DNA of 64,000 nucleotides from contig OZ116709.1 in the NCBI GenBank assembly GCA_964199315.1, positions 11,346,001 to 11,410,000 of the forward strand, read 5' to 3'. A program made the position numbers and the translations under genes. Numbering within the stretch: position 1 is the first letter of the stretch; every line of letters starts with the position of its first letter. Of the stretch, positions 23,792-48,539 are shown in pieces. Under the pieces are notes generated by a model. The model was not told the DNA's origin. It ran no database searches and saw only the letters and a program-made list of their open reading frames with translations. The stretch is from Orbicella franksi. Lineage: Eukaryota.

Positions 23792-26700
23792 TCAAGTTAC
23801 ATTTGGAACGACTTCGGTTTTGCTTGAAGAAAAGACGTGCTCGTACAGCAATGCAGCGATGATACCGCCTGGTATGGGTCCAACCCAGTAAACCTTAAAA
23901 AAACGGGGGAAAAGAAAAAAAAAAAAAAAAAGGCAGTGAAACGTTCATTATTCAAGAATGCGTCTTTGCACCTAAAATCGACTTCTTACAATGTTTCAAC
24001 AAGTTACCAGATAGCATTTCGCGAGCAAAATGAATCGGAAACCGGCTGATTGGTTTAAATTTTAAAAATTGGGATAAAAAGGTAAATCCAGCTTTCTTGG
24101 CTTAACACCAATTTCTGTAGCAAGAAGGGCGTAGGAATATTACTACCCCACTGGATGAGATGCTAGCTCTTTCTCTCGAGTTGCTTCAACGATTCACCTG
24201 TGCCCATATACACGCCAGGGTGGAGAGAGGCACTGTGAGAGTAAATTAGTGTCTTGCCTAAGAACGTAGAACAATGACCCCGGCAAGGACTTGAAACCTG
24301 ACCGATCGATCTGTAGTCTAAGTGCCCTAACTATTTTCTTGGCCACCTCGCTTCGCTCCCAGGGGTACGTGGACGTAAAACAGGTTCTCTCGCTTACCCA
24401 ATGATGTTTCCAAGAGTTCATGATCAGGGCGGGCCCGAATGACCGCGCGGGATTCATACTGCAGCCAGTGAAAGGAATCTTGGAATAAAAAAAAGAGTCG
24501 ATCGAAAATATTAGTCATCTTGCTACCGATTGCTAAATGTCCATGAACTGATTTTAAGGAGCTTCTTGCGCTCGTTCAATTTTAACAGAGGAATCCTAAC
24601 ATTCAGGCTAATTTCTGCATACCATGATTGGGAAGTTTGTATTCAATATAATGTACTGGTGGTTGTTTTTTTGTTTGCTTTTTCCTTTTTTTTTTTCTAA
24701 CAACGCGCGCTCTCATTGGCTACTTCGAGATCACCTAACTGTTTTCCGCCAAATGTTTCCCGAGCGGGCAACATTGCTAAATCTATGACGTCAGGGAGTA
24801 ACAGTGAACTGTTATCCGCGAATTTTGACCGACGACCACCATTGGACACCAATTCTTTAAATGTCTTCATTGTGCTGTGTAACAATATATACATTCGCGG
24901 GTAACACTGAGATTCTCGGAAAACAAAATTAACTGTTTCCCTCAGTACCAGTCTTTTTAAAGACTGGTACCGTTTTAAAAGACTAGTACTCTTTTTAAAG
25001 ACTGGTACTGTGTCAATGTTTGACATTTAAAAATGTTAAACATTGATACAGTGTGAGGTCCCTCATGTTGATAGCCTGCACACCTCAACCCTGAGTCGAG
25101 ACAAGTTTCTGCACGTACAACCAATGCCCTTCCTTCTAGGAGACAGCCGTCCAGCTATCTTAGTCCCGTGACTAAGATCTAGCGATCACAAATTTGTTCC
25201 AGCTCCTCTTTCCTCCCTTCCCCCGTCCCCTTACCTTCCCCCGTCCCCTTACCTTCCCCCGTCCCCTTACCTGCCCCCGTCCCCCTCCCTCCCCCGCAAA
25301 GTAGGTTGTTCCATTCGGTATATATTCCTTCCTTTTACTCATCAATTTCGACAATGAAGGAATCCTATTCGCGCAGTAAGCAGATTTGCGCACATTTGTG
25401 GAGGGAGAGAGAGAAGCTTCAATTACACCTTGGAATATTTTGGTTGCCTTGGTACAGTATTTCTAAGCTACTTTAACACACCTACCCCAACCATGTGACA
25501 GATGAACACACACAATCCTATGGACAGAGGTATTTCGTACCCTCGATGTTCCTTTCCAGGATCAGTCGCGGCAAAAATGGTGAAAATCAGCACAAACGTG
25601 AGAAGGAGCTCAATTCCAAAGGCCTGGGCACCATTTATCTCTTCCGCAGGTTTAGTCACTCCCAGGTCCCCGTGTAACCGAGGACTTGTCACGCCATACA
25701 AAAGCGCTGCTCCTAAAATTCCTGGTAACAAAAATACGTTTATTTCAAAGGTGGAGTTAGAAAGTGTAATTGTTTAATTGGCAGAATGTTAAACACAAAC
25801 AATGCTTAGTGAGTAGGTTCATTCCTTGGTTCGTTCGTTTCTTCGTTCGCTTCGTTGATTGTTCGTTCCTTCATTGGTTCCCTCGTTTGTTCACTCGTTC
25901 GTTCGTTTCTTGGTCGTTCGTTCTTTCGTTCGCTCCCTCGGTCGTTCGTTGGTTCGTTCGTTCCCTCGTTTGTTCACTCGTTCGTTCGTTCCTCGTTCGT
26001 TCGTTCGTTTCGTTCGTTCTTTCGTTCGCTTTTTCGGTCGCTCGTTGGTTCGTTGGTTCGTTCGTTCCCTCGCTCGTTCGTTCCTTCGTTCGCTCGCCCT
26101 CTCGTTTGTTCACTCGTTCGCCCATTTAATGATAATCTGTCTTTTACAGATCCGTATGACAGGGTAAACGTGAAGCAGTCAAAAATGTCATTCAGGTTTT
26201 CAGCCGCAAAGAACATATTTTTATCTTAACCACTCAGTGGCACGACCCTTTCAACTGTACAAACAGAACGTTTGGCAAATATGGAAGCCTCAGATATATA
26301 AAGTGTATTCCGGAAAAAAATATTTATTTTTCGTCGTTGCTGTTTGTTTTGAAAGACGGCACTGTGTATATAATTTTAGCTTGCGCTATTCGGTAGAATA
26401 CGTCTACTGGCAAGCTTTGTACATAAAGGAATCTTTTCCAAAAGCAATACCAGCCTTGAGTTGCTAGTTCACAATCCTCGATAGCAAATTGCACAGTAGA
26501 TTTGCGAAAGATACCATCCTGACAGGGTTTCAGACGCATTTCAATTGTGAAATTAAATCGCTTTTGTGAACATGTGCTTTTGCTCTGCCTCTATATATAA
26601 CTACAATCTTAAATTTTCTGTCGGTCCAAGATATTGTAAAGTTAAGAACCAATGTCAAAAAACTGTTGTAAACTGATGGGGCACTTGAAAAGTGGAACCC

Positions 26701-29441
26701 ATTCTAAGAGTTCAGTTTCCTTGTAAACAGCTATTTTCCTGTAAAAGAAATATTTTGTCAAGTTAGTGTCGCTAGGTTACAAGCCTTTATAGGTAGTTCT
26801 AAGTGAATTTTGTATAGAATTTCAAATCTGTGCAAAAACTTAATTTGCAGTAAGCTAGGCGCGAATTTCTGGGAAACAAGATTTTAAGGTAACGTTGGGT
26901 ACAAGGGTCACCTTTATGTACGAATTTAAAATTACAAACTTGGATTCAAAATTAAATTTATTTTCCACTATTTCCTCGAAATTTTGCACTGAATGAAACT
27001 GTCGCACAATATTCGCTCTCCTGGTAACAGAGCTCACAATTTCTTTCTTTCTTTATCCTTTCTATCTTTGTTTCCACGACATTTCAAATGTAACCGAACT
27101 GTCGAACAATATTCGTTTTCATGGTAACGTAGCTCAAAATATCTTTCTTTGTCGCGCAAAAAGTTAACCATATACTTGCTTCCTTTAAATCTGTTTTTTA
27201 GTGTAGTTTATTTACTTGCGTTCGGTGTACTATTTCACCGGTTAGGGCGGGATTCATTATCGGGAGTCCTCAGATTTTTTCTTAATATGTACACTCTGCC
27301 CCCACAAGAATATATTTTATAAGAATATCGAGGCTGAAATTTTCAAAATTTTAAGAATATTTTAAGAATAAACCCGAGGCTGAGATTTTGAAGAGAATAG
27401 AATTTTTGTGTTGAAAACGTTGTAAATACAATACAATTATATATTTTTAACTAAGCCGCGTAAAATTCTTCCTTTCTCTAAATGGCAAAACTAGCCCAAA
27501 ATACAACAAAAACAGCACTAGCTGTATGTTTGATGCTAATAATATTTCTCAAAGAAGTTACGTGTGCCATATACCAGGCTTCAATCTAAGAATATTCACA
27601 AGAATATTTTCAGCCTAAAATCGGCAGAAAAAATATTCAGCTCGGACCGGGAAAACAATATTCTTCATAAGAAAAAAAAGTTCAAGTCAACTTTGGCAAA
27701 AAAAAATTGATGGAAAGCAGAAATTTATTTTAATAAACGTTCCGAGGACCGCTATAGGGAATCTTGATAATTATCACAGACTTTAATTTAATAAAAATCA
27801 AGTGTGCTTTTTGGCCAACGCCGAGCGTAAACTAAAATGAAGCGTAAACTAAAATGGAAACATGCAATGACAAGTGACACGTACGGATGTGTTTGGTTAC
27901 CGAACAGATAAGGTTTTTGTTTTTTTGTGCCGGCTTATCACAGATGCCAGCTTTATCAAGAACATCGCCAGTGAATGCATGCGGAGTTTAAACAAAAGTG
28001 CTGTGGCGCTTCCTATTACGTTTTTGCGAGACAAAATAAAATTTAAGATTGCATGATTAAAGAAGAATAAATTTCGAGAAAAAAAAAACTGAATATCGTA
28101 CGTACATAAAACACTGCGTACATTCTGTCTTCTTCGTAAGGTTTACACCGGTTTTGTAGCTAATTTAATTTTTTTTTTTTTTTTCAGCAAATGCAAAGCT
28201 TAAAATACACGGTAAATTGTAATTACACCTCGGAAACTACAATTAATGGTATGGAAATTTCCCTGTATCACTTTCTTTTTGCTACGCTAAGAAATATAAA
28301 CCGGAGATGAAAAAAAACAAAAACCAGTGTCCGCATCTTCTAGTTGCATGTTTGCAGCTTACCCTAAAACAACCACTCCGAAAGATTTGAAATATATGTC
28401 TTCCTATGACTTCCTTTTAGTGTTTACGAGTTTTTTTGACTGCCTTCACCTGTTTACCGCTAGTCAATGACAAATTACAATTGTAAAGAAGTATTCTTGT
28501 GAACTTTTCATTTGCGAATTTAAGTTGGGTTGAATAATGAACAACTTCGGTCTTTGGAATAGAAGTATAACTGTCACAGTGATTTTATTCCTTTGTCGCT
28601 TTTAACTGATAACACGTTCATGTTTATTTTCTATTTTTCAGGCCCTCACAGGCTGAAGACGAAAGTTTGCGCAGTCAAACGATTTTATTTGAATTCGCCT
28701 GACTAAGTGACGTATTCCTTAAGCGAAACGTATTCTTTACGCTTTGAATTCATTAATTTCATCATTTAATTGCCGTCCAAAATAAAACCCATTACAAGAA
28801 CCGACCATAAAATAAAAACTTATGGTTAAGAACAAGCTTTTTTGCACATATCGGGAAAAATAAAGACAATTTCTTGCTTAAAGATTTCTAGGACCAGTGA
28901 ACTAAACAGGGAAACCCGTTTGTCGTAATTTTCTCATTTAGAAGTCACCATTAAATATAAGATACATATACCTGAATGCGCATGAAAAACGTGAATGCAC
29001 GTTTAAAATGTACTAGAAAGTTCTTCAAACGCAGTGCGGTTTATTTGGATGTTAATTGGTCCCCTCGTTTCTCGCGAGCGAAATTGTTGAAAAATATCCA
29101 TCATGGTGTAGGATATTTCCCTATGTGCACCTAATTTATCTACCTCCAAGGAGCTGCGCCAGCGTATAAAACACCCCTTCTAGGATCGAGATTTTCCGTG
29201 CTGCCATCAACGCAACGCTCACAACAGGGTTTATGAGGCCTCCGCTCAGGTGCCCGATCGTCATGGCTAATGTGGCGATGCTAAGTCCTGCAGTGACGGA
29301 GACGTGTAGGACAATGTCAGAGCTGCTGTACCGGTTTAACTTTGACCCACAAACCAGAAAAACAACCATCGTTGTCGCAAAAAATTCTCCTCCGGCACAA
29401 ATCCAAAATTTGCGCTTTCGGAGCGCAGTCGCGTCCGGCAT
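23792..29441 (-). CDS. AQP: Aquaporin AQP-A (238 aa; NPV/NPA; ar/R A-H-C-R)
   Basis: Exons 29441-29144, 25721-25486, 24478-24398 and 23893-23792, all GT-AG and in phase. Motifs GLSIATLA...[36 protein letters not shown] and VYWVGP. Confidence 0.93.
25217..25288. repeat. 18-bp tandem repeat x4 (CTTCCCCCGTCCCCTTAC)
   Basis: Three perfect copies and one diverged copy in AQP-A intron 2. Confidence 0.85.
25825..26120. repeat. Complex (TCGT)n tetranucleotide microsatellite in AQP-A intron 1
   Basis: Dense TTCG/TCGT units, with TCGTTTGTTCACTCGTTCG recurring three times. Confidence 0.9.
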
Positions 29442-31265: not shown

Positions 31266-32434
31266 TCTGCAGCAGGTCTATAAGGACGTGAGTACGCGGA
31301 CTGAAAATTGGACAAGGTCAGAGGTCCCGATTCCTGGTGCTGATCGAAAGGATCGCGGATTCCGTGAAGGAGATTTAGAGACAACGAAGGATGGGGAAGA
31401 TAACGCCGGCAAGCACATGCGTGACAAGTGGAAGCCGCTGATTAGATTTTGCGATTGGAAGTCCATAAATAAAAAACACTACGACGATAACACACAAATG
31501 TGATTAAAGTTTTAATTCTTCACGCCATCCGTTTGTCAGTATTGTAAATATTAGTATATTAAATATGCGCAATTTACCAAATGGAAGATGGTTTTCCATG
31601 TTGTTTAACTCGAAAGAGAATATTGAACGCTTGAGGTCTAGAAAAACTCCTAATGGACACGTGAATGGAACGCAAGTGCGTTCAAAAATTTTTCTAGACC
31701 TCAAAAGTGCATTATCCTCTTTTAGAAACGTTGCATAAAAAAGCAAAAATATTTACATCTAAGAAGAGGCGGTAATTGCGTTGGCAACACAAAATCCGGA
31801 AGAAAACTGCTTTAAAATTTCCAGCCCTGCATTTATAAAAAAGAAATGGCGAATATGCAACAGCTGTATTCTAAAGGCTTCATAGTTCAGTTTTGCTTGG
31901 TTACAATCCAGTTGAAGACTCGTAGTTTTCAGGGATTTCTTTTTAACTTCCGTCTACATTGTGTAACTTATTTACAATCGAGAGGTTTATTTCAAGTCAA
32001 CTAAAAATTCATACAGAACTATCAGTGTAGAGACTGTTTCTACTTTGCGAATCACTCTTGAGAAACAATGCCAGGGCAACCATACTCTCAACAACTTGAG
32101 GCCATGTTCGTGTTCTCGCCGTAGTGGACTGGAACCAGCTTGCAATGGAGGCTTATGCGGGGGAATATTATTAAACGAAGATTAAAGTCATTTGCATTTG
32201 AAAAGATTCCCCGCCGGCATTAGCCTCAGTTGCAAGTTAGTTCCAGTCCTATACCGAGAATACGAATATGGCCTATTCCATGCTACGAAGTTTTCGTCTA
32301 CACCAAACGAACCCAGAAATCCTTGCAAGCTAACCCGTGTCCAGTCTCCCAAAAGTTTCTATATACTGAGTCTCTTTCTTCCGCTGTATACTACAAACAG
32401 TTCTGTTTTGAATTTCAAACATGTATTAAAACTA

Positions 32435-35400
32435 TTAAAAATTGGAGACAATGAACTTTGATGTATCATTCTGGTCCGTCATTTCCACAGTGTAGGTGTT
32501 ACCATTTTGTAGTGTATCAGTCTGCTTCTTTCCTTGCCCTGCAAATAACAGCTGGTAAGTGCACGTCGCCATCAGGCCGCCAGCCGTAGGAGCAATCCAG
32601 TATATCTGTTATTGAGAGAGAAAAATGAGTAGATCGTGTTAAATCACGTCCGTAAGTTTCTTCTACACCACGAGACCTAGATTGTGAAACATCGTTTTTA
32701 CGGCACTGTACTCCAATTTTTTTTGCCTCTAGCTTGAGTTACTGACTGACTGTAATATTTTTTGTCGTAGTCTCATAAGCCTGCATGTTCCAGACCACTA
32801 ATATTTTCCATTGAAAAATTTGTAACGGTCACTTTTGAATATGTATGTTGACTAGCATACAAAACGTCAAGTTCTGATTAAAATGAGCTCGAATACAATG
32901 TTTATCACCGTTGTTTGTATTATATTTTTTATCAAACTACGATGGCCTAAGAATAAGAGTTTATACGATACCGCATGTACCATCACTTCTTTGCACAGAT
33001 ATCTTACCATCGACAAAACTAATCCTTGTCTTGCAGTATTCTACGAGCACTTGATATCTGTGTTCTAACATCGTAAACCGACGCTCTATTCTACGCCAGG
33101 GATAAAACATTTGCCTTGGCGAAGCTTTCGTAGAATATCCAAAGTTGTTTTCGTGTCGCCACTGAGACGTTTTGTATCGGTATGAGTCGCTGAGCTCCAT
33201 AAAAGTATGAGACTAAATAATACTAGTGTATCTTGAATTTACTTAGTTTGGCCTCCTTTTCCAAAAAAGGTATGAAAATTCCCCCTATAAATCGTTAATA
33301 GAAACCTCTTTCAAAAGGCCAGCACGTGCCCAAAATATAACAAAAGAATACACATTCAGAAAACGATAGATTCGATAAAAGAATACCGTAAAAGACATTA
33401 GCACTAGGGTAGAAAATACCCTTGTTTGGACACGCAAATTTTGCTACCACATCATCCACAACCTGTTTTCTTACCCAATGGTCTTTCCACGAGTTCATAA
33501 TGACAGCAGGGCCGAGAGAACGAGCAGGGTTTAGGCTGGCCCCAGAAGATGGGATCTGCAATGGAAATAAATTAACAAATTCACGTCAGTTTTTTATGCG
33601 TCTGGCCTCTTATTGATGATAAATTGCGTCATAACATTGTCAAAGTGGCTGTGGAACCACGAGCAGGAGGCAAGTGGTTCCGCAGTAAACTGGTCAAGAC
33701 CCAAAACTGGTCAAATGCTGGGAATGATTGAGGGGAAAAGACGCCGTAAACTTGCCATAAACAAAGATAAGTGAATTTTATTAAAAATGTCGCGAACATT
33801 GTCAATAGCTTCTCTCATTTTTTGATTGGCTACTTAAAAAAGTCCATAAAATCTCATTGGTTAAAAAGTTGACAGTTTAACAGCTAAAAGTCAAACTTAA
33901 ATCTTGCATAAAGTAAAATTTTATTCGTCTGTACTCTTATTTATGATTAAAATGAGCCAATCACCCGCGCGAGAAATTAGGCAGTTACGGTATTGTAAAA
34001 AGAATAGTTCACAGATTCGCACATATGACTTTGCCTTTTTCCTTGCCTTCTCGTTGGAAAATGGTCCTTATATTTGTAAAGCGTTATGAAATTTCTTGTT
34101 TTAATTGCCGCTCTGAACTCAAACAAGGCATGCTATCTACATACTAATGTTTAGTTCCTACCCCATGCATGAGACAGATGAACACAGTAATTCCAATGGC
34201 CAGCGGTACCCCATAACCTGTCATGCCCCTGCTTGGGTCGGTGACCGCGAAAATCGCGAAAACCAAAATGTAAGTGAGGACTAGCTCCGTCACAAACGCC
34301 TGCGCAGTGGTGACGTCATTGGCGGGTGCTGTAACTCCTAAAGCGCCAACAGATTGGCTTGGAGTGATGCCGTAAACAATGGCTGCCCCACAGATGGCTG
34401 AAAAGGAAACAAAACATGAGCAAATTTTGTCTTTAGAGTTGAGCTTGTAGGGCAAGTCTACATACGAGCCAAGTGGCCCATCAGGCCGGCGCTTATCACC
34501 GATTTCTGTAGCATGAAGCGACTAGGACTATTTCTACTCCCCCCTGGATGGGATGCTGGTCCATCACAGGGTTACCCCCAGCATTAAACTCATTTATACA
34601 CCCGCATGGGTGGAGACAGGCTCTGTGAGAGCTACCTGTCTTGCCACCGCGCCTTCCACAGCAAAAGGTATACTCCCTTGAAAAAGAGTCATGTTAACAG
34701 TTGCGCAGCTCGGAATCTTAACATTTAATATATATCTTTGTAGTATAAGACTTGATATAAAGCTTGGCTTACCAGATCCATACCACCATTCCAAAATTTC
34801 CTTACTCTAGTATAGAGAAAGGAGAACGAATGGGAAGCGGGTTGCACGTGAGAATGCTGCCTACCAAATTGACCCATCAAAGGGCGAATATTACAAGAGA
34901 GATCATAATAGTTGATGTTGCTTGTAAGGCGTAATGGAGGAAAATGACGGTCATGTATTTTCCTCGGAAACATTCCCCGCAATAACAGATAACAACATTA
35001 GACAGTTCTTCCTGGATGCTCTCTGTCGTTTCTCTGTACATTCATGTTTTCATTTACAGTCTTGTCTGAATTTAATACCTTCTTTTGGCCGAGAGGTTAG
35101 ATAATTTAAGTAACTACTGTTTCCATGGTTTTCCCTTATATGAGATCAATCTTTAACGTTAGCGTGTTTGGTAAAAAAAAAAAAAAAAACAGGGAAAAAG
35201 AATGTACATTAAAAGAGTTAAAAAAAGACAATCTGATTGTTTTCTTTCAAAAATAACACTAATTGAGAATAAGGCTGATTGTCTAAAAATAGAGTTAGCC
35301 ACAAACTTAACTTCTATTTTCTTGTACACGTATTTCTAGTTTTAAGACAGCTTTTAATCTACTAATTTCTTCATGGGACTTCTTAAAACCAGTTATATCA

Positions 35401-36653
35401 GAGCTATGCATAACTATCTCATCGAGAACTTGAACGGCACGAATTTGTAATTCTTGACCACATATTTCATTTCATCGCTGTGGGCTCTTTTGTTTTATGC
35501 CTGAAATATTCTCCTTGGTCCAATGGGTTCGAATTGATCGTGTTAACTGTATTATCTTTTCAAGCTCTTTTATTACACTGAGCTTGCTTTTGACAAAACT
35601 TGATATACTGACTGATATTGCGTTCATAAGTGGAGGTGCTAATCTTCGTTTGGCTTTTGCAATAGTCCCAAGTCTGATGTTCCTTCCATTTCCTGACGTG
35701 AAGTGTCTCGTGTAATTGACTAAAAACAGACTTCACTCTCTCCAGAGATTTTATATTATTTTTTTACGCTTGCTTCAGGCTCGGATGGGTTTCTTGTTGC
35801 TTTTCGCCTTCATTAAGATTATTTTTAAAACGAAGCATGAAAATAACTAGTCCTGTCTTGAAGGAAAAAAAAACGATTTATTTCTCGTCCTGAAGTGAGC
35901 GTTGCGTTCCCTCTTACTTTATGTGAAAATTTCAAAACACATCATGTGTTATAGGAGTTTGTTTGCGATCCACTCTTATGTAAATATCTGAAGTAATGTG
36001 AATTGTCACGTCATTCCATTGAGTGTTGGCTTTCAATTCCGGTTTACAAGAGAAGCTTAATAAAGTGAAAACTTAATCAACTACAGCAACCTGAAATTAA
36101 GTTCACTTGTTGTTCATTAAGTATAGAAGAACTCGGCTGTAGCCTTTTAGAAATCCCGTGACTTTTTAGCTCTTTTTTAACACTCCTCCGGAAGAGGTCA
36201 GTGCTTTTACGTTTACCAAAATATATCATTCTACAACAGCCAAATGCTTTGAATCGTTAGCCAATTTCCTGAATAGCGAATTTTATATAGATCTACATTA
36301 ACTCTCTCGAGACCGAATACTATTTTCTATTTGCATAAATCCTTACCTCCCGTGCACTGCGCTATGATAAAGAAGAGAGCTTTCAACATTGAAACTCTTC
36401 CAACGGCCATCATAGAGATGGTCACGGCTGGGTTAAGCTGTCCTCCGGAAATGTGTAGAATAGACATGGCAAGAGTCGCAATGCTCAGTCCATGGCTGAA
36501 AGCGATGTGCATAACCGAAGGAGGGCTGTAGTTCCATGGTAATACAGTCCCACATACCATGAACAGGAATAAGAGTGTTGCTAAAAACTCGGCGAAGACT
36601 TCGGTCCAAAATGATCGGGAACGTAACTCCATTTTACCGTCTCGAAGAAACAT
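32435..36653 (-). CDS. AQP: Aquaporin AQP-B (264 aa; NPA/NPA; ar/R H-L-A-R)
   Basis: Exons 36653-36347, 34397-34162, 33555-33475 and 32605-32435, all GT-AG and in phase. Motifs [56 protein letters not shown] and IYWIAP. Confidence 0.93.
34445..34635 (-). mobile_element. Truncated copy of SINE family 1 in AQP-B intron 1
   Basis: Aligns by eye with 12161-12350 (CATACGAGCCAAGTGGCCCATCAGGCCGG...GTTACCCCCAGCATTAAA). Confidence 0.7.
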
Positions 36654-40466: not shown

Positions 40467-40776
40467 CTCCCGCACTCTCCGCTGCAATAAAGAACACTGC
40501 TTTCAAGATTGAGACCCTTCCAACGGCCATCATGCAGACGGTCAAGGCTGGATTTATAAGTCCACCAGAAACGTGAAAAACTGACATGGCCAGAGTTGCA
40601 ATGCTCAGTCCACTAGTCAATGCAATGTGCATAACAGAATTTGGAGTGTTATTCCAAGTTAACCCTGTTCCACAGGCTAGAAACAGGTATAAAAGTGTAG
40701 TTAAAAATTCGGCAAAGACCTCGATCCAAAAGAAACGTGAAAGTAGATCCGTTTTTGTGCCGCAATGAAATGTCAT
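40467..40776 (-). CDS. AQP: Orphan aquaporin first exon (AQP-C; TM1-TM3 half, NPA intact): candidate alternative first exon of AQP-B, or a truncated paralogue
   Basis: ATG to phase-1 donor GGAG|gtaagg, 103 codons with no stop. About 63/91 aligned residues identical to AQP-B exon 1. No exon 2, 3 or 4-like sequence seen in 36654-40466. Confidence 0.85.
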
Positions 40777-43107: not shown

Positions 43108-44841
43108 TTACAGCTTTGAATCTGCGTAAAGATCCAATTCGTTGACTGACTCAGCAGCGGCGCCCATCTCTTTTCGGGATCGAAAAACCAACTGGTACAG
43201 AAGTGCTGCCACCAAACCTCCTCCAATTGGTCCAGCCCAGTACACCTGAAAGACACACAGATATGTTTAAAATGACAGGCGTTTCGGGAAAACTTAGTCT
43301 TGCAGAAGTGTCAGAAGCGTGCGCAGCAATGTTGAAAGGTATCATGGGTAGAGCTGGCTGGCTACCACCTTGTTTAATTAATCGAAGTTCACGGTGTTTC
43401 TGCGTGAAGTAAGAAGAAACCATCTATTTTGGTTTCATCTATTTTCCCTTCCATTAGCCTGGAACACCGTGAACTTCAGTGATCAACCATTGGTATACTG
43501 AGGAGGGAGCGTGGCAAAGTGGTTAGGGCGCCAGACTTGAAATCCGGAGGTCACGGGTTTAAGTCCCGTTCTGGCCACCAGCTGGTGTTGCTCTCGGTAG
43601 TCTCGATCTCGCAAAACTGCAAAAATGTATGGGTGGCAAAAACGGTAATGAGCCCATACGTTCTTTGTAAGATTTTGAGTTTTTAAACTCGTGTGACAAA
43701 TAGTATTCTATATTTCGGGCTTAAATTTCTTGGGGCAGTTAATCAAGCCACGCCTTTTTAATATTCAGAATGATACAGACTATGATTTGAAACTGAAGAG
43801 CTTATGAAGGGAACAGTTTAAACAAAGATTCCATTCAAGATTTAAATAGTTGGCAAATTGTCTTTTACAACCCCGTCTTTATTAAAAGGGGTGCTCTAAC
43901 TTTCAAGGCTGGGAATGAAACCAAAGTCTGTTCTAATTCTAATGAAAGTTATTTGCCGGGAATTTCTTATGTTCATAGTAGTATTAATGGTGCTGCACAA
44001 GTTTTTTTATTAAGCTGGTGAAAACTATTGACCAAGCAGAACGTTTCTGTGGTTTTCGTTAGAAGACTGTGGATGAAAGCTTAGTGAGAGGCCATTTAAA
44101 TATAAGCTATTTAGCACTGACTACTTTATCTTTTTAACTACTTTATCTTTTTAAATTTTTGTCAAACATAGCACAAATCTATCTTGAAAGATATTTTCTA
44201 TTCTTTTCAAATTTGTATCAGAGCTTATCTGGCAACGAAAATCTGCTTTCTGTAAAAGTTTGATATTCGGCGAATGCTTATTCATTGCGTTTTTTTGAGT
44301 TGCTGTGTAAGATATCTACCTCGCCAAATACGTTTTCACCCTTAAACAGCCTCTTTTGTACTGTAATAATCTAGAAATATGTAAATTGCTCAATGTTAGA
44401 CCCTGTAATCACATACCCAGTGATCCTCCCAGATTTCTTTTTTGTTCATGATGACCGCTGGACCAAACGAACGTGCAGGATTTATACCACATCCCGTAAA
44501 ACCAATCTAAAAGTAAAGCACAAAGTTAAATTATGATGCAATGTGAGCCAAACTAAAGGAAGAATTGTGGATCATGGTGTTTATAGCTGTGGAAATTAGC
44601 CAGCTGTATATCCGCCATAGATCTGAATTACTTTTTCAGTTAAGGAGGAGGGCAAAGATTAAATATCAGATATGCAGCAAACTATTGTTTTAGGTCGGAA
44701 AAAGCTGCAGCAATTGTTAAGGGAATCCTTTTCCTTGTTGCTCGTAAAAATGGACAAGCAGGAAGAAAAAGAGCTCTAAATCCAAGAGGAAAATGCTGGA
44801 TTTGAGGCACATCGGGAACAACTCAAGATTTTACTGGTTTT

Positions 44842-44876
<35 letters not shown>

Positions 44877-47800
44877 GCTGCTGCTGCTGCTGCCGCTTTG
44901 TTTTTGTTGTCTATGTGTCTGTTTTTCTTTTCTTCCTTTCTTTTTTTTTGGGGGGGGGGGCGTGTACATGTGTGTTCCTTTTATTTTTTATGAGACTACT
45001 TTTAAAAAGAAAAATTAAAAGACGGTGTCAGCCTGTGTTGTGGTTGCTGTTTGAGGTTTTCAACGAGTCTTAACTGATCTTAACTGCGTCAAAGTGAGCT
45101 TTACCTGTACTAAGTTCACAATAAATCTGGGGCACTTACTATTTACATGGGAAAACCGGAAATTCCAGTTGGAAAATCAAATGGTTCGCGCCATTCCGTT
45201 TGGGAAGCTTCAGAAAATATGGGCTGTGATTTGAGGTGATGCTATTTTTCCGCTGTTTTAAGTCTCTCTAGCTGATGTGGATATACTTAATACCGATTCC
45301 TTCTCCCGCAACGTGGCATTCAATTGTTTAATGTTTATGCCTGAAATTTCCAACCGGATGGTTTTTGTAAATGGTAAGCACCCCTTGCCTCCCAACATAG
45401 GCCCGCAATGCATCTATAGAAGTGTTCTATTTCAGAGATGTTACAAGTTACAAGTAATGATGGTTTAACCGCACTATTGGCCCAGGCAACCAATATGTTT
45501 CGTTTCTACATCACTAGTTTTCTATTGGACAGCTTGATTGTTAAACCCTTAAGGTCTATAGCGTCAGTGTGAGGTAGGCTATAAATTTAGAGACCTTAAC
45601 TCACCCCAATAAAATGACACACAGCTACACAAAGGCCGATAGACAGCGGGACTTCGTATCCATAGTGATTCCTCTTGGAGTCTGTACTAGCGCACACAGT
45701 GAAGACCAGAAGGAATGTCAGCAATATTTCAATCCCTACCGCTTGTGCCGCGGTCACACCGGGGCCTGGGACTGTCGCTCCCAGGGTTCCGCGTTTCTCG
45801 TCAGGTGTGATGTATTTCAATACCGCTGAGCCAGCGATACCTTGTTAAGAATAGAAAGATATCTTATCATTTTGATTGAAAAATGTAAATTTGCTGCATG
45901 TCTGCGTTTTTCAACATTATAACAAAACGGGTTTGTGTGCATAAAGACGGTTTAAAAACGGTCCGCAGTGCGTGCAAAATCTTTAGCTTTGGTTTGTAAA
46001 TATACGTTTTTGTTTGCGTGATGTCTTTTAGAAACATGTTCCCTTATCTACCCCAAAACCACACCACACTCGATCATTTGTATTTCAATTAATAAATTGA
46101 GTGTTATTTAGTTTTTTATATAAGAGCCATACAAAAATCAGTCAACCAAAGATTGCCCTGATGCAGAACCTCCATTTTGACGAAAAATATTTTCGCGATT
46201 CACAGTGAGAGCAGAATCATTAAAGTGTCACGTATTTTTTTCAGGCGAACGTCACTGCGCGGTTGAACCGGATATCCGTAATATCTTTGGCCCGCCCAGA
46301 ATGTTCGGTATTGCCTCTATGGAATTTTTTAAAAATTGTTTACACGACACAAAATGCTTGCCAATGACAACATGTGGAACTCACAGTTTGCATAGACCCA
46401 ACCCGAAAAAAAAAAAAACACAACGGCAATATTGCACCAAATGTTGTAAGACAGAAGGCGTCTTTTTTAGTCCGGAATCTTGTTGACTATCAGCAGCATT
46501 GCTAGCAAGTTTGCCGCTATTTCCTGCCTTTTTGCTGCCCAATCACTGACCCGAGCAAACAATGTGTTTCTCCTCCCTGCCAATCGTTAGAATTTCCCAT
46601 TAAGTCTTAACTTTCAGAGATTCTGATATTTCACCAAGGTCATTGTCCATTTATACTTATCGATGCATTGTTCGCCAATGTATCGGTTTTGAGAGAATAA
46701 TTAAGGTAGGTGTTGCCTTGGGATGGGAACTCATAAGAGCTTTCCACTTGAACTTCGTCTTAATGGACGGAAGAAATTACCATTAATAACGTAAGCTATT
46801 GATAAGATCTGTATATCAACTAGCTTGATGTCTCTTAAGATTTTGACCGACCCCGTCGGGAGCCAATGGCGATTTTAATTGTTTAACTCTTACATGAAGT
46901 TTCTAAAAATAATAACTCAAAAACAAAGGATGCTAGTGTGTATTAATTGATTGTGTATTATCTCAAAGGTGATGTTTTTTTCTCCGAGACGAAGGGCACA
47001 CGTTCTTTGTTTTTGCTTGATCAATTACAGCAAATGGGAAACAGCCACGCTTTATACAGGCATTTGCATTTGTATTCCACGCACTTTTGAAGCCCTTGAC
47101 AAGTTTGCTGCAAAAGACGTCAGTTGATAAAGTAGCTTTTGCTGGGAAACAATGACGGACAATCAAAATGGCGGCAGTAAACCCAGATCTTTGTTTCCAA
47201 GACATAGTCAAAAAGTTCAAAAAACTGAAAATTAGATACGTTTTCCACTCGACATTGCATTGTGTCTAATTCTAGTCTGCTGGAAGGTTTCAATTAGATA
47301 AGTGATATAACAATCTTCATAAGCTTACATAAGTATGAGTAATAATCACTCTAGAAGTCCCACTTATGCCCTTTTAACATGCATGTTAAGTCATGTGTGG
47401 AATGAAAGCTTTTTTGGGTGAAAACATTCTAAATATTTTTAGAATTTATTCCAAGTGGTATGCGAGCCAAATACCTGTCATAGCGTTTTCGTTAAGCGTT
47501 AGGGGCGTTTTCTATATTCAATTTGCCAGCTCTCCTCTGGAGGCGACGACATAAAATACAAAACCCGCTTCGGTAATTTTCATTCAGTGAGAGAATTGAA
47601 CAAAAATGTGGCGGTTTTACAGACGATTTAACCAGGTCCACGAAAGTTGTTATTAACCCACATGACTACCATAACTTGTGTTCAGCCAGTTTTTTATTCA
47701 AGTCACGTTTTTCGCGATTGTTTCGTACCTAAGATTACTCTTTTAGAAATAGTACAACAGTTCAACGGTGTTGTTTGGATTGAAATAAAGAAAGGTCGGC

Positions 47801-48539
47801 CGTTATTATTCGTTTTCTATGATCATTAGAAGTTTGACAGCATTCAATATTGCCATTAAAGGACATTGAGAAGACTTGTTGTGCACCTTACCAAATTAAC
47901 ACTACATATATGGTTGGTATGAAAAGAACATTTGCAAGCGTTTTCTTTTTTTCTTGAGAAGAGCGGACAAACTTTGTAGGATAATTTCTATCTTCCTTAT
48001 GCTTTTAAGATCGTTGGTCTAAATGCGTTCGTTCGTTCGAAACGAAGTTACTGAAAAAAAGACTTCCTCTTACATCTATAAACATTATCTTTTTGCTATC
48101 TCAAGAATCTTCCGTTAGTCTTTCACCGAGTACTAAATTCCGAAGAATCACTGAATATAGAAGGTAAAAGTAAAGTTGTTTACATCCTTTTATAATTATG
48201 TACCAACAATGCAAACACGTCTTTTATGGTACACTTACCTCCAGCCAGCTGAAAAATAACGTAGGTTATCCCTCGAAAAACGGAAACTTTCCTGATGGCC
48301 ATCATGGCAATGCTAACGGCGGGGTTGATGTGTCCGCCACTGAGATGCAAGCTGCACATGGCCAGTGTGGCAATGCTGAACCCAAAGCACAAAGAAATCA
48401 GTTCCGTGGACGGTGGATGAAGCGGATTCCACGTGATGGTTGTACCAGTGGTAAGGAAAATGAAAAAGAAAGTCGCAATCAGCTCCACCAGGGCACTTGC
48501 CCAGAAATGGATACTTTTCAGCTCTGATATTAGCATCAT
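43108..48539 (-). CDS. AQP: Aquaporin AQP-D (254 aa; NPA/NPA; canonical water-type ar/R F-H-C-R; AQP4/AQP1-like)
   Basis: Exons 48539-48239, 45840-45605, 44506-44417 and 43245-43108, all GT-AG and in phase. Motifs [47 protein letters not shown] and VYWAGP. Ends ...ADSKL. Confidence 0.94.
43506..43604 (+). mobile_element. tRNA-like SINE head (family 2), truncated
   Basis: A box TGGCAAAGTGG and B box GGTTTAAGTCC, followed by GCCACCAGCTGGTGTTGCTCTCGGTAG, which is shared with 10330-10597. Confidence 0.65.
44842..44896. repeat. Compound (TTG)n(CTG)n microsatellite in AQP-D intron 2
   Basis: About 12 TTG followed by about 5 CTG units. Confidence 0.9.
45129..45384. mobile_element. MITE with GGGG termini (PIF/Harbinger-like)
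   Basis: TIR GGGGCACTTACTATTTACA / TGTAAATGGTAAGCACCCC (3 mismatches). TSD not clearly preserved. Confidence 0.6.

Follow-up and report, generated by a model that had tools for sequence, protein, structure and literature searches.

In a 64,000-nt window of the Orbicella franksi genome (contig OZ116709.1, positions 11,346,001 to 11,410,000 of the forward strand, assembly GCA_964199315.1), we analyzed the aquaporin gene AQP-B. We consider it fairly probable that this gene encodes an expressed stony-coral AQP4-like aquaporin with a duplication-derived constriction of the AQP8/TIP type (His, Leu, Ala and Arg; H-L-A-R), which likely passes ammonia (NH3) and probably hydrogen peroxide (H2O2) as well as water. 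After tandem duplication, AQP-B would have lost the filter His of transmembrane helix (TM) 5, the water-selectivity residue of classical aquaporins, in favor of Leu178, while keeping a small Ala187 in loop E and gaining His54 in TM2. Together with Arg193, these residues would form a wider and less polar constriction through which NH3, and probably H2O2, could pass besides water, and AQP-B might stand in functionally for an AQP8-type channel, a class absent in cnidarians. A possible, though on balance not probable, extension is that stony corals, in a phylum that lost the AQP8-type channel, re-created a channel of the AQP8/TIP kind for ammonia and peroxide out of an AQP4-like water channel before their main split, and that a His/Ser exon switch in the Orbicella lineage provides two selectivities from one locus.

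Selectivity filter, gene structure and first exons of AQP-B

The filter of AQP-B consists of H54, L178, A187 and R193. In a HMMER alignment to rat AQP4 (2zz9), uninterrupted by gaps in TM2 and from TM5 through loop E into helix E, these residues fall opposite the AQP4 filter residues Phe, His, Ala and Arg, respectively. In BLASTP against a marsupial AQP1 model (P0239), H54 was paired with F56; this protein model is broken, which makes the BLASTP pairing unreliable in loop C. The two Asn-Pro-Ala (NPA) boxes are found at residues 74–76 and 190–192. An earlier note on this DNA had proposed an AQP4/AQP1-type scaffold with an AQP8/TIP-like filter, and the motifs on which it drew (AFSHGLS, ICLMHG and SGASLNPAR) are indeed present as it described; they lie on the minus strand, in exons 1, 2 and 3. 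Two of the substitutions it had derived by comparison with AQP1, F56 to His in TM2 and H180 to Leu in TM5, were confirmed by the HMMER alignment to AQP4, the former also by the BLASTP pairing. The third, C189 to Ala, requires rewording: Ala187 is present, but it represents a change only in comparison with AQP1 and the Cys-bearing tandem paralogues AQP-A and AQP-C. Ala at the loop-E filter position is the AQP4 state, and compared with AQP4, AQP-B differs at two filter residues only.

AQP-B does not carry the water-selective signature of the classical grade (an aromatic residue in TM2, His in TM5, Cys, Ala or Ser in loop E, and Arg), and its tetrad is of the kind that defines AQP8 and TIPs (His in TM2, Ile or another aliphatic residue in TM5, Gly or Ala in loop E, and Arg). 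On sequence grounds, it is a member of the classical grade by descent that lacks the functional filter signature of that grade. The Pfam MIP profile (PF00230) matched exons 1, 2 and 3 with E = 1.1e-26, 9.5e-15 and 4.3e-09, respectively, covering profile positions 1–205 of 222. In line with the proposed scaffold, AlphaFold predicted a confident aquaporin fold with the expected six TM helices and two half-helices (predicted local distance difference test (pLDDT) score of 89, predicted template modeling score of 0.84), in which the tail fell below a pLDDT of 50. The model superposed on AQP2, AQP5, AQP4 and AQP1 at a root mean square deviation of 1.2–2 Å. The classical AQP4/AQP1-grade scaffold is thus supported by sequence and fold, as well as by exon structure, tandem position and phylogeny, as detailed below.

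All introns of AQP-B are canonical (GT..AG). Its transcript evidence comes from Logan contigs, in which all three splice joints (32605>33475, 33555>34162 and 34397>36347) were present in two RNA libraries. One 690-base contig spans exons 2, 3 and 4 and the 3′ untranslated region (UTR), which runs to ∼32239 (about 196 bases), and the spliced contig joining 36347 to 34397 extends the 5′ UTR of exon 1a to at least 36811. The transcript-derived protein P0151 (264 aa, from a 1141-base Logan contig) agreed with the gene model at 261 of 264 residues, with three substitutions, whereas the raw-read RNA runs X23 and X24 had almost no reads on AQP-B. The NCBI protein P0001 ('aquaporin-5-like isoform X2' of Orbicella faveolata) is identical to AQP-B through exon 3 but continues from there into intron 3. 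The resulting C-terminal 59 residues, from which TM6 is missing, are an artefact of annotation: the exon-3 donor is read through (window 33295–33561, minus strand), whereas P0151 and the RNA joints are spliced correctly. Very high summed depth of RNA contigs (up to ∼24,000), with many loose ends, was seen at window positions 34300–34700, 33500–33900 and 32100–32300. These stretches sit in introns 1 and 2 of AQP-B and just past its 3′ UTR, and look like abundant transcribed repeat families rather than parts of the gene.

AQP-B has two mutually exclusive first exons, 1a and 1b, and the use of 1b swaps TM1, TM2 and loop B. The span 32435–36653, which the earlier note had given for AQP-B, is therefore the coding region of one isoform, while the gene also uses the first exon at 40776–40467. 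Exon 1b is 68% identical to exon 1a; its TM2 filter residue is Ser55, and its loop B reads GGLINPAL. According to tblastn, it is a lone exon-1 copy, with no exons 2–4 between it and position 36653. Splicing exon 1b in silico to exons 2–4 gave a protein of 265 aa with the filter S-L-A-R, which matched the proteins P0411 and P0417 at 263 and 262 of 265 residues, respectively. As the source contigs of P0411 and P0417 are only ∼1 kb long, these contigs must be transcripts, and the two proteins support splicing from exon 1b to exon 2 over a span of 6071 bases. Furthermore, exon 1b was complete in four polyA RNA runs, and most of it was present in others. In a tree of first exons, the exon-1a sequences, among them the Ser form of Acropora, formed a group to which exon 1b was sister (84/56).

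In the azooxanthellate cold-water coral Desmophyllum pertusum (GCA_029204205.1), a B-type exon 1 that contains AFSHGLS and GGQLNPAV (88% identical; L026:25239-25544) comes after the AQP-C orthologue. An A-type exon 1 (L026:28033-28332) lies ∼2.5 kb beyond it, with no B-type exons 2–4 in between, and the locus stops short of the A-type exon 2. The Desmophyllum His exon either belongs to a truncated B gene or is used by the A-type gene as an alternative first exon.

Origin in an AQP4-like tandem cluster and conservation of the filter

AQP-B is part of a head-to-tail array on the minus strand of the window, in the order AQP-C, exon 1b, AQP-B and AQP-A (Table 1). The positions and phases of its introns are common to AQP-A, AQP-C and two further genes of the assembly, on C5 and C8. 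Exon 2 measures 236 bp in AQP-A, AQP-B and AQP-C, and exon 3 measures 81 bp in AQP-A, AQP-B and the C5 and C8 genes and 90 bp in AQP-C. We take the exon-3 boundaries to be identical to those of human AQP1. With four coding exons and an 81-bp loop-E exon, AQP-B has the structure of the classical grade; classical aquaporins have four exons and aqp8 genes five to six (PMC2829555).

In protein searches, the nearest relatives of AQP-B were its coral orthologues (71–99% identity), followed by aquaporins of Nematostella and Actinia (50–51%) and the Desmophyllum orthologue of AQP-C, P0014 (50%). More distant relatives included jellyfish aquaporins (45–46%), vertebrate AQP4 (43–47%), insect AQPAn.G and plant PIP2. 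The matches listed for AQP-B were classical aquaporins, PIPs and MIPs of prokaryotes or fungi, with neither AQP8 nor TIP among them. Likewise, searches seeded with the TM2-His proteins P0086 and P0237 returned bacterial MIP channels only, with no AQP8 or TIP, and look-ups in the ESM Atlas yielded only generic aquaporin clusters. Against solved structures, AQP-B scored 192 bits with AQP4, 188 with AQP5, 186 with AQP2, 177 with AQP1, 169 with AQP0, 139 with PIP2, 108 with TIP2;1 and ∼80 with AqpZ. The best 30 Foldseek matches in Swiss-Prot were all AQP4, AQP2, AQP1, AQP5, AQP0, AQP6 or AQPAn.G, and AQP8 was absent from these 30. We determined the aquaporin complement of the entire 497-Mb assembly with a Pfam MIP scan, which revealed no AQP8-type gene. 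This agrees with Finn et al. (2014), who classed coral genes as aqp4-like and recognized no genuine cnidarian aqp8, the candidates being symbiont, bacterial or plant sequences (PMC4245216, Text S1).

We calculated an IQ-TREE (LG+C20) tree of 50 proteins, in which AQP8 and TIP sequences were not included. The B-type proteins formed a clade with a support of 100/100 on a long stem (0.84), which was sister (96/72) to a group of AQP-A, Nematostella, Actinia and AQP-C proteins. All proxies for the descent of AQP-B point the same way, namely away from the AQP8/TIP lineage. Judging from these comparisons, the filter appears to have arisen inside the cnidarian AQP4-like tandem cluster rather than to have been passed down from an AQP8-type gene. 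The conversion by tandem duplication that the earlier note had envisaged therefore holds as to its origin among AQP4-like paralogues, but a direct change from Phe to His in TM2 is unlikely. AQP-A, its orthologues and Nematostella have Ala at this filter position, as do most of the anemone relatives, and the route to His thus probably led from Phe via Ala, perhaps via Ser.

H-L-A-R was present in 11 proteins, including those of Oculina patagonica, Stylophora pistillata and Montipora foliosa, whereas the B-type protein of Acropora has S-L-A-R. As H-L-A-R occurs in both 'robust' and 'complex' corals, it is older than the main scleractinian split. B-type proteins have just eight fixed residues that differ from the one conserved at the same position in 21 other classical aquaporins, and both altered filter residues are among them: H54, Q72, F95, V110, L178, S185, A213 and T224. 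Of these, Q72 replaces His in loop B two residues before the first NPA box, and S185 replaces Thr two residues before Ala187. None of the 10 B-type proteins retains the TM5 His, which every one of the 21 other classical aquaporins in the comparison has. The long stem followed by strict conservation suggests a functional shift and subsequent purifying selection.

Counted as state changes in the tree, the TM5 His was lost at least six times among classical-grade proteins, with filters such as A-I-G-R in Aqp14, A/S-T/S-A-R in insect-type proteins, F-I-G-R in Daphnia and N-L-A-R in Diadema. The latter protein (P0127, Diadema setosum), an AQP4-like sea-urchin protein, has local motifs close to those of AQP-B (AFSNGL, GLMYGIPYTGAS), and a JGI/Logan protein (P0126) has T-L-A-R; in each of them, the TM5 His has again been lost independently and replaced by Leu. 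We also observed that His in TM2 was accompanied by Gln two residues before the first NPA box (GGQxNPA) in 159 of 282 sequences, compared with 4 of 180 with Phe in TM2, in counts from 534 parsed proteins that are not phylogenetically independent. This pairing was present in at least three unrelated lineages, namely the coral B-type, a bacterial H-H-A-R group and a Planctomycetota H-I-A-R group.

Predicted permeants and competing explanations

Three of the four substitutions in the engineered AQP1 F56H/N127H/H180I/C189G (Kirscht et al. 2016, PMC4814140) have natural equivalents in AQP-B, making it a natural counterpart of this AQP1-to-TIP2;1 conversion. In that study, human AQP1 H180I alone permitted ammonia permeation, whereas the fourfold mutant reproduced TIP2;1-like selectivity with the ammonia-to-water ratio of TIP2;1, and the authors explained the restored water flow by the small residue in loop E. 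Since these three equivalents are present, AQP-B would be expected to conduct NH3 and probably H2O2. AQP8 and TIP2;1, which are known ammonia and H2O2 channels (PMC4814140, PMC5816522), have the filter H-I-G-R, and H-L-A-R follows the same pattern of His, an aliphatic residue, a small residue and Arg (PMC5816522). AQP-B differs from them in having Leu for Ile, Ala for Gly, Thr for His or Phe in loop C, and four exons instead of five to six; with 108 bits to TIP2;1 against 192 to AQP4, the likeness is probably not one of descent. Vertebrate Aqp14 (PMC6906440) and insect entomoglyceroporins, both of the AQP4 grade, independently took the same route, losing the TM5 His and gaining new solutes. 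They form separate lineages in the tree and have Ala or Ser in TM2, whereas exon 1a of AQP-B has His. In its filter, the S-L-A-R isoform is closer to them than the His isoform, and with what should be a still more open, Aqp14- or entomoglyceroporin-like constriction, it would be expected to be more permissive.

Several points weigh against AQP-B being an AQP8/TIP-like channel for NH3 and H2O2. At the fifth filter position in loop C, AQP-B has Thr125 (in LGVT), as does AQP4, where AQP8 and TIPs have His or an aromatic residue, although this assignment, made within a loop, is less certain than those in the helices. The position corresponds to N127 in AQP1, H131 in TIP2;1 and F139 in AQP8 (Kirscht et al., PMC4814140; PMC5816522). 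The mimicry of AQP8 and TIPs is therefore incomplete, and the likeness proposed in the earlier note extends to the tetrad but not to loop C. In TIP2;1 and AQP8, the loop-C His or Phe and the TM2 His reposition the Arg (PMC4814140, PMC5816522), so that with Thr in loop C the coral Arg193 may sit as in a water channel and not be displaced as in TIPs. AQP-B thus lacks the loop-C His of the engineered AQP1, its combination of His, Thr, Leu, Ala and Arg falls outside the mutants tested, and in AQP1, H180I alone nearly abolished water flow (PMC4814140). As to descent, the exclusion of AQP-B from the AQP8 clade rests on proxies, as the tree was built without AQP8 and TIP sequences; the A/B/C clade support of 96/72 is not decisive, and the deep branches of the classical grade were unresolved. 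Forcing the B-type proteins together with prokaryotic H-I-G/A-R channels, the only proteins with this filter in the approximately unbiased (AU) test, gave a borderline result (log-likelihood difference of 31.2, p = 0.051). Finally, the contig joining exon 1a to exon 2 had a depth of 5.5 and ∼15 in two RNA libraries, compared with 281 and 53 for exons 2–4. It was thus close to the intron background (3–9 in the same libraries), with the caveat that contig depth is a poor measure of expression. This suggests that the Ser isoform dominates in these two libraries and that the His isoform may be minor in Orbicella-type adult tissue.

AQP-B could instead be a broad polytransporter that, like the entomoglyceroporins and Aqp14, conducts glycerol, urea and small polyols in addition to water, with the S-L-A-R isoform as the likelier candidate. 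We regard this as unlikely, albeit a contender to be taken seriously: the TM5 His was lost recurrently in the classical grade (at least the six state changes noted above), Aqp14 is a polytransporter (PMC6906440), and exon 1b has a small Ser in TM2 and seems to be the more abundant form. Yet the genome already contains four Glp-like genes, Leu178 and His54 are bulkier than the corresponding residues of Aqp14, and the retention of the TM2 His in several coral families argues for a specific role of its side chain. It is distinctly doubtful that AQP-B is still essentially a water channel in which the filter changes are tolerated or compensatory. While the scaffold, the NPA boxes, Arg193 and the AQP4-like Ala187 and loop C are all kept, every B-type protein has replaced a TM5 His that is otherwise invariant, replacement of this His in AQP1 alters selectivity (PMC4814140), and the long stem gives way to strict conservation.

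A true AQP8-grade orthologue, with an inherited filter and a misleading resemblance to AQP4, would explain the tetrad and be compatible with a tree lacking AQP8 and with the AU p-value of 0.051 for the prokaryotic grouping. Such descent is nevertheless very improbable given the tandem array with two classical paralogues of identical intron positions, the 50% identity to P0014, the bit scores (108 for TIP2;1, 192 for AQP4), the absence of AQP8 from the best 30 Swiss-Prot matches, four exons instead of five to six (PMC2829555) and the aqp4-like classification of coral genes, with no cnidarian aqp8, in Finn et al. 2014 (PMC4245216). We rejected it on account of the tandem classical paralogues, the bit scores, the exon number and that classification. 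Hardly credible at all is a decaying duplicate without function, to which the long stem branch and the orphan-looking upstream exon copy might point. The open reading frame is intact, the splice sites are canonical, polyA transcripts are spliced and the structural model is confident; moreover, orthologues in Oculina, Stylophora, Montipora and other coral transcripts are 74–96% identical, with the same filter in all of them. The intact frame, the spliced polyA transcripts and these conserved orthologues led us to reject a pseudogene.

AQP-B is almost certainly one of the cnidarian Aqp4L1-4 genes of Finn et al. (2014), whose table places two Aqp4L genes on one Acropora digitifera contig (PMC4245216). 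In the accessible parts of that paper, these genes are catalogued for phylogeny only, with no mention of H-L-A-R, its conservation or an alternative first exon (PMC4245216). The cnidarian Aqp4L family and classical aquaporins that lose the TM5 His and gain solutes are already known; in the literature searched, we found no filter analysis of a coral aquaporin, and no paper on a coral H-L-A-R filter, its conservation or the exon switch. The passage of NH3, H2O2 and small metabolites across coral host membranes is only partly known, and it bears on the symbiosome, on calcifying cells and on oxidative stress during bleaching. A channel of the Rhesus family has been localized to the symbiosome membrane (PMC8916725), and polyp calicoblasts show an enrichment of aquaporins (PMC8162421). 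A conserved AQP4-derived channel with an AQP8/TIP-type filter, in a phylum without AQP8, is a directly testable candidate, which could play a role in symbiosis, calcification or the handling of reactive oxygen species. Swapping a single filter residue by a change of first exon would be an unusual route to tuning selectivity.

Neighboring genes and the aquaporin complement of the assembly

The coordinates of AQP-B, its filter codons and its neighbors are given in Table 1.

Table 1. Positions, within the 64,000-nt window, of AQP-B, its filter codons, exon 1b and the tandem paralogues
Feature	Position	Strand	Description
AQP-B, whole coding region	36653..32435	minus	four coding exons, 264 aa, intact open reading frame
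AQP-B exon 1a	36347..36653	minus	307 bp; residues 1-102 plus one base; TM1, TM2 with His54, loop B GGQLNPAV, start of TM3
His54 codon CAT	36494..36492	minus	motif AFSHGLS, exon 1
AQP-B exon 2	34162..34397	minus	236 bp; TM3, loop C, TM4, TM5 with Leu178 (ICLMHG)
Leu178 codon CTC	34173..34171	minus	motif ICLMHG, end of exon 2
AQP-B exon 3	33475..33555	minus	81 bp, 27 codons; loop E and helix E, Ala187, second NPA box, Arg193
Ala187 codon	33540..33538	minus	motif SGASLNPAR, exon 3
Arg193 codon	33522..33520	minus	motif SGASLNPAR, exon 3
AQP-B exon 4, coding part	32435..32605	minus	171 bp; TM6, disordered C-terminal tail, stop codon
Exon 1b, alternative first exon	40467..40776	minus	310 bp; ATG, GT donor, same donor phase as exon 1a
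AQP-A, tandem paralogue	23792..29441	minus	238 aa; filter A-H-C-R; exons 298/236/81/102 bp
AQP-C, tandem paralogue	43108..48539	minus	254 aa; filter F-H-C-R (classical); exons 301/236/90/138 bp

The order of the B gene followed by the A gene is conserved in Acropora and Stylophora, where it is visible in read-through gene predictions. These are the NCBI 'uncharacterized protein' models P0397 and P0398 (Acropora) and P0420 (Stylophora), of 509–519 aa, in which a B-type and an A-type protein are fused by read-through; they are wrong as proteins and useful as evidence of synteny.

In addition to the array, the Pfam MIP scan of the assembly identified the two four-exon AQP4-like genes on C5 and C8, with the filters F-H-C-R and A-Y-C-R, respectively, and four Glp-like genes arranged in two pairs on C10 (9.89–9.90 Mb and 10.04–10.05 Mb). 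It also revealed one single-exon MIP open reading frame with an Asn-Pro-Cys (NPC) box, resembling AQP11/12 (292-aa open frame, G000:C5:25844327-25844875); NPC as the first box is the signature of the 'unorthodox' AQP11/12 group. The C8 gene (G000:C8:26215110-26218299; loci L015, L022 and L023) has Tyr at the TM5 position and SLPLVHANPAV in loop B instead of SGGHINPAV, with no in-frame ATG directly upstream of exon 1, and may be a divergent or decaying paralogue.

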